Both the position numbers and the translations under genes were made by a program. From contig CM075980.1 in the NCBI GenBank assembly GCA_038087875.1, positions 68,944,001 through 69,008,000 on the forward strand: DNA of 64,000 bases, written 5' to 3'. This document shows positions 20,501 to 23,500 of the stretch, one piece after another. This stretch comes from Malacoraja senta. Lineage: Eukaryota. The notes under the pieces were generated by a model. It did not search any database. It was not told the origin of the DNA and saw only the letters and a program-made list of their open reading frames with translations. Within the stretch, counting starts at the first letter, position 1; every line of letters begins with the position of its first letter.

Positions 20501-23500
20501 TACATTTTTTATTGCCTACACAGTATTGTACTGTTGCATTTTCAGATTGTTTCCATGAAAGTATTCAATAAATTGTTCAGTTCAAAAGTCCAGGATGCTA
20601 CTTGACTATTTATCGTGTTGGTGCAAGTGAATGCTCTTAACTCCCTGTCCCATCTTAATGGTCCAGGTAGACACAAATTGCTGGAGTAACTCAGCGGGAC
20701 AGGCAGCATCTCTGGAGAGAAGGAATGGATGACGTTTAGGGTCGAGTCCCTTCTTCAGACTGAAGAAGTCTGAAGAAGGGTCACGACCCGAAACGTCACC
20801 CATTCCTACTCTCCAGAGATGCAGCCTGTCCTGCTGAGTTACTCCAGCAATTCGTGTCTATCTTCAGTTTAAACCAGCATCTGCAGTTCCTTCATACACT
20901 TAATGCTCCAGGTGGGTATTTCTTAATTATTTTTTTTGTGAGCTAATTCTTGCATCCTGGTTGTGTTGCAGAGGGAGAGCTGTATGCTGGAATTTCCTCT
21001 GATTTTATGAGTCGGGATGTGGCGTTCTTCCGCAGCCTGGGACGCCGCCGTGTGATCCGCACTGAACAGTACGATTCAACATGGCTCCAAGGTGAGGGAC
21101 CATTGGAGCAACCTACATTTGCCAGTAAAAGCTTTCTCCTATAAGAATTTGATGAGCAACGTATCTCATTCAGTGCGCACTGATCTCAAGACAAACGAGC
21201 ATCAACCTGAAGTTTGAACTGTGGAAACTGAGAATGGGGAAAAGTCAGGGTCTTTTATTCATGTATAAAGTAGAGAACATAGAAACAAAGGTAATGGGTA
21301 AATACATGAAATGTACCCTGAAAATAGACCAGGTTATTGGGCCTTTGTTGCTGGCTCTTGCACTTTAAGATGAAGAGCTTCCTCCGTTTCTTCATTCTGT
21401 TAAGGGCCTGTCCCACGGGCATGCGACTCCATGCGGCAAGCCCGACCTAACCGGAAGCGGGGGCCGAGCAGGGCCGCGCGGAGGTCGAGTGATCCCCGTA
21501 CAGGGCCGGTCCCACCAGCATGCGGCAAGCGCTACCAAACCGGAAGCGGGGGCCGCGCGGAGGTCGAGTGACGTCAAGAAGGTGCGTACGGCGTCGATGC
21601 GGCTGCATACGGCGTCGAGGCGGTGCGCACGGCCGTCGGTGCGGCACGCACGGCGTCAATGCGGCTGCGGGGCGGCAAGCCGTTGCCGCGCGGAATTTTT
21701 TAACAGTGTCAGTTTTTCGGAGCCCCGCGCGATGTCGGGACCAACTCCGCACAACTCCATACGGCTCCGGCGATCGAAGTGGGACTGGCCCCGCGACCTC
21801 CGCACGGCCCCCGCACGGCCCCCGCTTCCGGTTAGGTTCCGCTTGCCGCATGGAGTCGCATGCCCGTGGGACAGGCCCTTGACTCTACTGCTTTAATATG
21901 AGTGACATGTGGAAACATTACCATTTTTGAGATAATTTTCTAATAAGTTGGCCCTGATCATCTCAGATTAAGTTCTGGGTATGTCTAGAAATTTGCTTTT
22001 ATTTGTTTTACTCTGCTTCTGAAATGTTCTTCAATTTAATTTTTACATCCATAACAATTTTTACATCCATAAGTCATGGTCATGCTGAACTCTGCAGCTG
22101 ATAAAGTGGATGTGGATTCAGCCAGCGTCCTGCTACTACTTACAAAATGGTACTAGCATCAGTTGTGTAGTTGTGTTCACATACAGACCAAACTTCAGCT
22201 TGGTCCCTCACTCTCCCTCTAACTGGTTTGGTTAAATCCACATTGTTTCTCCCCAGACCCCAAGTTTGTAAAGGTCCATGCCATCGCAGAGAGCAACAAT
22301 GAAGAGGACGACAAAGTGTATTTGTTTTTCACCGAGCGCGCTCAAGAGGTGGACAGTGGCAACGGGAAGGTGGTCTATTCGAGAGTGGCTCGGGTTTGCA
22401 AGGTACAGAGAATAACTGGGAATGGTTGTAAGCCAGAGTATCTCCACAGGGAAACATGGATTGATTCACACTTCTGCACCAGGCATTGTAATGACACCCC
22501 ACACTTTACATTGCGTTCTGCTGTCTCTGAGATTCGAATGAAACAGTTTTGACAGGATGTTGAACTATTCTTTAAGCATCTAGACATGCATGTGAATTGC
22601 CAAAGCATTGCTTGCTGCAGAACAAATGGCAGCAAATGGAACTAGTTTTGATAAGAACCCATATGTTTACAAGTCTCAAGTTATCATTGAAAATGCAGAG
22701 TTTAGTTTAGTTTAGAGATAAATCACGGATACAGGCCCTTCGGCCCACCGACTCTGCGCCGACCAGGAATCCCTACACACTAACTGTATCCCACACACTA
22801 GGAACAATTTACAATTATAACAAGCCAATTAACCTTCAAACCCGTACGTCTTTGGAGCGTGAAAAGAAACTGGAGCTCCCGGAGAAAACCCACACGGGTC
22901 ACGGGGAGAATGTACAAACTCTATACAAGCAGCACCCGTAGTCAGGATCGAAACTGGTCTCTGGCGCTGTGAAGCAGCAACACTACCACTGCGCCACTGC
23001 ACCACTGTGCCGCCCCCTGCCGAGTTGTCAATAGCTGTCATTAGTCTTCCTGGTCTTTAAGCAGAATGTTAGGTCAGTGTTATTAGTAATTATTAGATTT
23101 TCATCTTCTCCTTTCCAAGCGTGGATGTATTATTTACATGCCTCCAGTTCTCTTGAAACACCCCTTTGTTTGAGAATGATTGGCAGATGATACCCAGACT
23201 CTTCAGAGATGTCCATCTACTCTTTCCTCAGAATCCTAGGATACCTCTCACCTGGACTGGGCAACTTTTCCACTTGAGGTCAACCAATCTTTCAAGTACT
23301 TCCTCTTTATTTTAATCGTGTCTAATTTTACCATTGCCGCCTTGCTTGTGCCCTAGACAGCAGCCTCTTGAACAAACGCAAAGTACAGTCCTCATTTGAC
23401 CCCTCATGCCTTTATAATAAAATTTCCCGTTTAGTTTTTAATCATCCATATCATTTTACAGTGTATTCTCCTTTTATGATACCCACTGATTTATTTTCAT

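Follow-up and report, generated by a model that had tools for sequence, protein, structure and literature searches.

We analysed a window of 64,000 nucleotides of the Malacoraja senta genome (assembly GCA_038087875.1, contig CM075980.1, positions 68,944,001 to 69,008,000 of the forward strand), in which a palindromic insertion, or foldback, is located at 20654-20913. This insertion belongs to a large family of related segments, which very probably derive from Penelope-like elements (PLEs) as very short retrocopies of their 3' terminus; target-primed reverse transcription would have inserted them, often as head-to-head pairs. The foldback is composed of a 15-bp repeat, an inverted arm, a 5-nt filler, a forward arm and a second 15-bp repeat, and the palindrome is 245 bp. 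Its features, in window coordinates and with each arm as a copy of one short unit, are as follows.

20654-20668: left target-site duplication CTTAATGGTCCAGGT; 14 of 15 positions match 20899-20913
20669-20761, minus strand: inverted arm, unit copy without tail; 92% identity to PLE 3' reference positions 447-544
20731-20758, minus strand: decayed mirror of the hammerhead-like core; GAAA changed to TAAA and U10.4 to A, core pattern not matched
20762-20766: 5-nt filler GAAGA between the two 5' ends; also found in the genomic foldbacks L002 and L004
20767-20898, plus strand: forward arm, full unit from common 5' end to long 3' end; 92% identity to reference positions 448-580
20770-20797, plus strand: minimal hammerhead-like core; single pattern match in the window, 0.02 expected
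20899-20913: right target-site duplication CTTAATGCTCCAGGT; 14 of 15 positions match the left copy

The outermost position of the inverted arm, 20669, is the short 3' end (GTGTCT), and its innermost position, 20761, is the common 5' end of the family, an A located 3 nt ahead of the core. The last ~35 bp of the forward arm are the PLE "tail" (..AACCAGCATCTGCAGTTCCTTCATACA). The two arms are identical at 85 of 93 positions and have in common a private variant relative to the family. The core reads CTGAAGA-A-GGGT(CACG)ACCC-GAAACGTC, in which CUGAAGA, an extra A, helix II GGGU/ACCC, loop CACG, GAAA, CG and UC can be distinguished; the predicted hammerhead cleavage point lies between 20797 and 20798.

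The relation to PLEs was revealed by the sequences upstream of the unit. In several copies the unit is preceded by a conserved region rich in pyrimidines, and this in turn by an open reading frame (ORF) ending in a GIY-YIG endonuclease motif (L025/L031), and fragments of GIY-YIG/reverse transcriptase (RT) ORFs precede the unit in L025/L031, L033-L046, L044 and L045. The unit, with its hammerhead motif, is found ~115-580 bp downstream of the GIY-YIG ORF ends (L031, L044, L045) on the sense strand, so the PLE layout is an RT-GIY-YIG ORF, a pyrimidine-rich 3' region of ~115-580 bp and a unit of ~100-135 nt. In the window there are two endonuclease fragments, at 1066-1211 and at 4914-5261; a decayed unit and a ..CCA[GA]CATCTGCAGTT.. 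end come after each of them, and one of the two fragment-to-unit loci is shortened by an internal deletion. Considering that the unit lies downstream of endonuclease ORFs at other loci and twice in the window, it represents the PLE 3' terminus. An earlier reading, made from the sequence only, had taken the segments as Penelope derivatives, had placed a decayed unit after a GIY-YIG fragment near 1068-1425 and had called for a check of linkage to Penelope ORFs; the linkage exists (L031, L044, L045 and the window), and tblastn put that fragment at 1066-1211.

The longer PLE ORFs that we recovered have 438 and 487 residues. In Pfam, the 487-residue ORF matched RVT_1 (E 1.9e-5) and GIY-YIG (E 5e-4), both under the curated cut-offs, and it has the typical ..LIYIGETKRRLGDRFAEH.. 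motif; the 438-residue ORF matched GIY-YIG only, weakly and under the curated cut-off. An 86-residue GIY-YIG piece gave 88,252 first-look candidates when searched in the genome. At least four PLE lineages exist in the genome, each with its own version of the unit. One lineage is very young (L047-L076, e.g. L045:1407-3085): dozens of its copies have 99-100% identity in the 3' unit, and their 5' truncation points vary from 200 bp to more than 1.6 kb, which suggests recent or ongoing activity of this lineage in the genome.

Using the right arm of the foldback as blastn query, we found copies in the window at 9784, 15628, 20226/20320, 20665/20759, 36639/36721, 40905 (minus strand), 41351, 43543 and 51152/51214. 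A conserved 23-nt box, GATGCTGCCTGNCCNGCTGAGTT, occurs 13 times in the window with at most three mismatches (0 expected), adding copies at 1382, 16931 and 40357. The segments at 31400 and 53440-53740, also counted to the family by the sequence-only reading, are older and more decayed relatives as judged by eye. Thus the family described there is real and very abundant. A genome search with the family gave at least 4,097-4,655 first-look candidates, and each of the 40 that were scored is 91-94% identical. Rough extrapolation from 13 copies per 64 kb in the window would put the copy number in the 1.94 Gb genome at several hundred thousand. The family frequencies given below are drawn from ~250-300 kb of fetched DNA.

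The four target-site duplications of 12-15 bp named in the sequence-only reading were all recovered: 12 bp at 15621/15727, 13 bp at 36632/36855, 12 bp at 43531/43634 and 15 bp with one mismatch at 20654/20899; a fifth duplication was detected in the window at 20207/20428. In all fetched DNA, 21 of 95 elements have a flanking direct repeat scoring at least 9, compared with 2 in a displaced control. The duplications are variable (10-18 bp), and a single repeat pair encloses a whole foldback.

Copy starts and stops were mapped on a reference of 603 nt, which covers the sequence between the end of the endonuclease and the 3' terminus. Two groups of 3' ends could be distinguished, ~35 bp apart, one short (..GTGTCTATCTT) and one long (..CCAGCATCTGCAGTTCCTTCCTACAC); consequently the "one fixed end" claimed for most copies is one of two alternative 3' ends. 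In those of the 18 true head-to-head pairs that have kept both outer ends, a short-ended arm is always combined with a long-ended one, and no pair (0 of 18) has the tail on both arms. The young lineage behaves in the same way: in L050, L067 and L075 one arm ends ..GTGTACC by TTAA and the other adds ..CGATTTTCCAGCATCTGCAGTTCCTTCTTTAAC. Its paired arms are cut at different inner positions, for example 2303 versus 2847 and 2574 versus 2965, and are therefore two separate complementary DNAs (cDNAs) and not one cDNA folded back. Adjacent arms no more than 50 bp apart are head-to-head in 24 cases and tail-to-tail in 3. These adjacencies and the one-tail pairs bear out the proposal that the inverted partial copies are the inverted-repeat trait of PLEs.

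In the young lineage (L047-L076) the short 3' end is always next to TTAA, and the target duplications of three of its foldbacks end TTAA or TTTAA; the sequences hint that the endonuclease may prefer a TTAA-like nick site.

Among the known traits of PLEs are a tail of 30-40 bp, present at one end, and a 5'-truncated copy in inverted orientation (Craig et al. 2021, PMC8557442). Purified protein of an Anolis lizard PLE cleaves and extends both target strands in vitro, and its reverse transcription begins at two internal sites that lie side by side (Frangieh et al. 2024, PMC11167929). The excess of head-to-head over tail-to-tail adjacencies agrees with a PLE protein acting on both strands, and in vitro the tail corresponds to the stretch between the two adjacent internal start sites (PMC11167929).

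Many copies have a common 5' end. Of 75 unselected arms, 40 have their start no more than 6 nt from the A of ..CAGTCTGAAGA.. (unit positions 1-6), part of them continuing into divergent upstream regions outside query coverage. The unit start is thus 3 nt upstream of the hammerhead-like core. Copies with clean duplications begin at this A or no more than ~4-5 nt downstream (43543, L025:994, L031:2452 and L018). The junctions of foldbacks usually oppose two ..AGTCT 5' ends, sometimes with short reiterations of TCTGAAGA between them. This pattern suggests a short template RNA with a defined 5' end. The surrounding heptamer, YCAGTCT, matches the YYANWYY consensus of initiators. For PLEs, the pseudo-long terminal repeat (pseudo-LTR) is regarded as the probable location of the promoter (PMC11167929).

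Taking these observations together, we propose that the PLE protein would nick both target strands and prime a cDNA on each, as found in vitro for the Anolis PLE. Each cDNA would begin at an internal site of the template RNA and extend to the RNA 5' end, and the two cDNAs would then be joined. With short templates that all begin at the A of YCAGTCT, both arms would be full-length and a near-perfect palindrome would be formed. At least the sub-lineage of the 20654-20913 copy would later have been re-copied as an entire foldback: the window copy, L002 and L004 have in common both the left-arm-only variants and the identical 5-nt filler, which points to a foldback lineage re-copied as a whole.

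Several points weigh against this account. The shared filler and left-arm variants are not explained by two-strand priming alone and imply the additional re-copying of whole foldbacks, and two-strand priming is itself borrowed from the in vitro work on the lizard PLE. For the common 5' end there are two candidate sources, a transcription start at YCAGTCT and a splice-acceptor-like pyrimidine tract followed by CAG. In addition, RNA sequencing (RNA-seq) gave no pile-up of read starts at the unit 5' end. This RNA evidence, here and below, consists of raw reads of one related organism mapped on the PLE 3' end, from oligo-dT and single-cell libraries.

We might also speculate, although we consider it rather doubtful, that the ~100-135-nt unit is a self-contained retrotransposition cassette, extending from a transcription start at the A of the initiator-like YCAGTCT to the internal RT start sites and feeding hairpins genome-wide. 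If this were true, every PLE 3' end would emit short RNAs that are copied onto both target strands by the dimeric PLE machinery. An estimated hundreds of thousands of perfect ~95-bp hairpins would have been seeded in this way, some of them retro-copied again, and hairpins transcribed within host genes would give long double-stranded RNA, from which small RNAs directed at PLEs might arise in large amounts.

The sequence-only reading had assigned the centre of the copies to the minimal hammerhead class, and in form this was correct. The motif CUGAAGA-A-GGGU(NNNN)ACCC-GAAA-CG-UC agrees with the published description of the PLE minimal hammerhead ribozyme (min-HHR): the catalytic boxes CUGANGA, GAAA and UH are present at 20770-20797 in the right order and spacing. 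There are 75 intact cores in the fetched DNA and one in the window, where the other cores are decayed. In all 14 aligned sequences we found the extra A (the unpaired nucleotide after A9), GGGU/ACCC with the G10.1-C11.1 pair, and A-CG-U (palindromic 15.2-16.2). There is no helix III, and the palindromic ACGU could pair between two copies. Helix I is composed of 2 contiguous bp, 2.1-1.1 (U-A or U.G) and 2.2-1.2 (G-C), in 14 of 14 sequences; pair 2.3 forms in none of the 14, 2.4 in one, 2.5 in nine and 2.6 in eight, short of the 4-5 bp expected of the class. The AGGT/ACCT stem I that had been pointed out at 51219-51254 is confined to one decayed copy and is not a feature of the family. An intron of the Drosophila virilis Penelope ends exactly at hammerhead helix I (PMC4209133). 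In the 3' region, no 5' splice donor able to lengthen helix I after splicing was found by eye.

A block of 28 nt is almost invariant between the PLE lineages, while the upstream sequence is unalignable and the next 22 nt differ at about a quarter of positions. The variable positions in the block are two loop II bases, 11.4 (A to G, with U.G kept) and H17 (C to U), and just outside the block 1.1 varies from A to G with its pairing to U2.1 kept. This variation is what a hammerhead would allow, as far as conservation can tell. The suggested covariation test of stems I and II, made with 14 sequences of several PLE lineages, revealed no compensatory change, and shuffled alignments scored equally high. 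The Rfam hammerhead models (type I, II, III, HH9 and HH10) gave no match in the window at gathering thresholds, nor on 20600-20950 even at E up to 10; no match is expected because the motif lacks helix III. MicroRNA-model matches on 20713-20815 are far below threshold and merely reflect the palindrome.

As regards activity, the monomer unit folds no better than its shuffles (z about -0.5), its minimum-energy fold is without helix II and competing pairings are preferred. The RNA of the whole 20654-20913 foldback is predicted to form a hairpin of -163 kcal/mol in which the core at 20770-20797 is buried. Were the copies usually templated by cleaved RNA, they should begin at the base after GUC; none of the 75 unselected arms has its 5' end there. 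The unit is present in sequencing runs of at least eight organisms. In the related organism, its RNA coverage is 10- to 100-fold deeper than that of the ORF and the upstream region, on both strands, and 81-95% of the reads continue into unrelated flanks; the unit is therefore mostly embedded in other transcripts. The proposed search for RNA 5' ends after GTC gave a negative answer: with a high pile-up threshold of one fifth of local depth, no pile-up of molecule ends was detected at the predicted cleavage site or elsewhere in the unit, in libraries that would miss small or circular RNAs. This agrees with the Anolis PLE study, in which the site was likewise free of RNA-seq ends, mutants of the hammerhead insert normally and cleavage needs the PLE protein (PMC11167929). 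Most likely, the copies carry the hammerhead-like block along as a relic; any activity would be weak and assisted by a dimer or by protein, and insertion would not depend on it.

In stranded single-cell RNA of the same related organism, the unit and its upstream region are covered 5-20 times more deeply on the strand antisense to the PLE, which is the plus strand at L033:1244-1390. In each run some 1,500-1,800 reads have poly(A) after L033 position 1387, beside a genomic A6, which could be a polyadenylation site or internal oligo-dT priming.

Two other explanations concern the palindromic shape. In the first, only one cDNA is made, which on arriving at the RNA 5' end turns back and serves as its own template, so that no two-strand priming is needed. 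Such snap-back synthesis would account for the main-family arms both ending at one 5' position, for the junction reiterations of terminal TCTGAAGA, as from jumping at the template end, and for private variants common to both arms of a pair. However, it cannot give the differing inner truncations of the young-lineage pairs (2303 versus 2847; 2574 versus 2965), and it predicts a variable outer end of the inverted arm, which is instead observed at the short reverse transcription start site; we regard it as improbable. The palindromes might alternatively be miniature inverted-repeat transposable elements (MITEs), that is, DNA transposons, a view suggested by the shape and by the chance hairpin-type matches to microRNA models, but the probability left for it is negligible. 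The variable duplications, the unequal ends with a tail at one side, the many solo 5'-truncated copies and the fact that the sequence is the 3' end of RT/GIY-YIG elements together refute a MITE identity, as the sequence-only reading had already argued. PLE insertion by priming on both strands remains our preferred account of the architecture.

For the hammerhead-like block, the same reading had proposed a retrozyme-like family that may make self-cleaved or circular RNAs. In a true non-autonomous family of this type, tandem or dimeric transcripts would self-cleave at the hammerhead and circularise, and the circles would be the templates of the PLE RT. The core is indeed intact in many copies and invariant between lineages, its ACGU palindrome would permit dimer formation, and a 2026 preprint (Li, Clavereau & Pollet) derives animal retrozymes from PLE pseudo-LTRs. 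There is also one unit-derived 66-nt tandem array (L049), with a junction read in the RNA of the related organism. Yet in the window Tandem Repeats Finder (TRF) revealed no array in which the complete unit is tandemly repeated, head-to-tail adjacencies number only 7, of which 4 are in the L049 array, and this array has neither the CUGANGA box nor helix II. The copies are not circularly permuted; they are dispersed monomers or head-to-head pairs. The arm starts, the RNA ends, the reads running into unrelated flanks, the 2-bp helix I and the monomer folding described above all stand against it, making this possibility a slight one. Another possibility is that the 28-nt block is kept as a recognition element for protein or RT, or as a downstream core-promoter element, and only satisfies a loose hammerhead descriptor. 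Consistent with this, no compensatory change was found and helix I is nearly absent, the downstream block GATGCTGCC..CCCGCTGAGTT is similarly conserved, the common 5' end lies 3 nt upstream in the initiator-like motif, and the Anolis hammerhead mutants insert normally. On the other side, the four variable positions (loop II, U-A to U.G, H17 and 1.1) are all where hammerhead rules permit; the extra nucleotide after A9, G10.1-C11.1 and palindromic 15.2-16.2 are non-descriptor traits of PLE hammerheads in many phyla; and the Anolis PLE motif cleaves once its protein is added. We consider this explanation a plausible minority view, somewhat unlikely to be right.

In the L049 array (L049:1-480) the repeated part of the unit has 66 nt, beginning with GAAACGTC and ending with CCAGCACTCTGT, the short 3' end. 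A genomic array of this type explains the "goes back 37" RNA joint, which was seen in hundreds of reads of the related organism.

Compared with known systems, the family is a lineage-specific and very abundant member of known PLE by-products. According to Cervera & de la Pena (2014, PMC4209133), most PLE min-HHRs are scattered single copies from truncated PLEs, and some are near neighbours on opposite strands. The motif resembles them in being on the sense strand of the PLE terminal region, with CUGANGA/GAAA/UH and without helix III, and in having the unpaired nucleotide between A9 and 10.1, the G10.1-C11.1 pair and the palindromic ACGU. It differs in helix II, which here has 4 bp against typically 6-8 bp there, and in helix I, with 2 contiguous bp (as in the D. 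virilis variant) against 4-5; the motif here is known from sequence. Likewise, 5' truncation, an adjacent inverted 5'-truncated copy, a one-end tail of 30-40 bp, two adjacent reverse transcription start sites and a hammerhead upstream of them are all described for PLE insertions (PMC8557442, PMC11167929). In contrast to these, the dominant product here has ~100-135 nt per arm and a discrete 5' end, giving the near-perfect 245-bp palindrome in place of the complex structure that is usual for PLEs, and one foldback lineage was apparently re-copied as a unit.

The metazoan non-LTR retrozymes (Cervera & de la Pena 2020, PMC7229834; Li, Clavereau & Pollet 2026) are also non-coding, hammerhead-bearing and related to PLE pseudo-LTRs, and presumably they too are mobilised by PLE proteins; their units are tandem, unlike the dispersed monomers and head-to-head pairs found here, and have a canonical type I hammerhead, and they give abundant circular RNAs. 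The 5' inversion of L1 by twin priming likewise produces an inverted 5' segment from a single target-primed insertion with one duplication, but the L1 segments are different parts of the RNA, whereas here both arms are the same part and start at dedicated internal sites. A full-text literature search with the element sequence gave chance primer matches only, and looking for PLEs in the genomes of sharks and skates brought up nothing specific.

For annotation, such palindromes should be labelled as PLE terminal fragments, and not as MITEs, microRNA-like hairpins or ribozyme genes. The family gives a clean in vivo picture agreeing with PLE integration in vitro, with two RT start sites, a one-sided tail and both-strand priming, and the formation of PLE foldbacks could be studied in the young lineage with its near-identical copies. 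The data add nothing in favour of a role of hammerhead cleavage in PLE mobility; the ends of copies and of RNA reads ignore the predicted site.

The other copies in the window are listed below.

1066-1425, plus strand: PLE GIY-YIG endonuclease fragment (1066-1211; tblastn E 1.5e-11), then decayed unit at ~1331-1425, box at 1382
4914-5430, plus strand: older PLE endonuclease fragment (4914-5261; tblastn), then decayed unit and ..CCAACATCTGCAGTT tail
9788-9884, plus strand: solo copy from common 5' end to short 3' end, no tail
15621-15738, plus strand: solo copy, 5'-truncated, long tail, perfect 12-bp duplication
20207-20440: older foldback of a sister subfamily, arms 20237-20320 (minus) and 20320-20419 (plus); 13-bp duplications with 2 mismatches at 20207 and 20428
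36632-36867: foldback, short inverted arm 36639-36695 and tailed forward arm 36721-36846, perfect 13-bp duplication
40905-41026, minus strand: solo copy with tail
43531-43645, plus strand: solo copy from common 5' end to near the short 3' end, perfect 12-bp duplication
51152-51311: head-to-head pair, left arm (minus) with tail, right arm stopping at the short site

At 53400-53760 an old pair of arms face each other, with both outer ends extending into tail sequence and ~150 bp of an unrelated repeat between them. This pair probably represents two events and is no exception to the one-tail rule.

An apparent coding exon is located at 20966-21093, ~55 bp downstream of the 20654-20913 foldback and after ..ttgcag. 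Its translation has what we take to be a semaphorin-like look. From the exon start at 20966, the foldback is therefore intronic and near a splice acceptor. The window also contains a minisatellite at 14934-15449, with a 26-bp unit in 19.8 copies and 99% matches.

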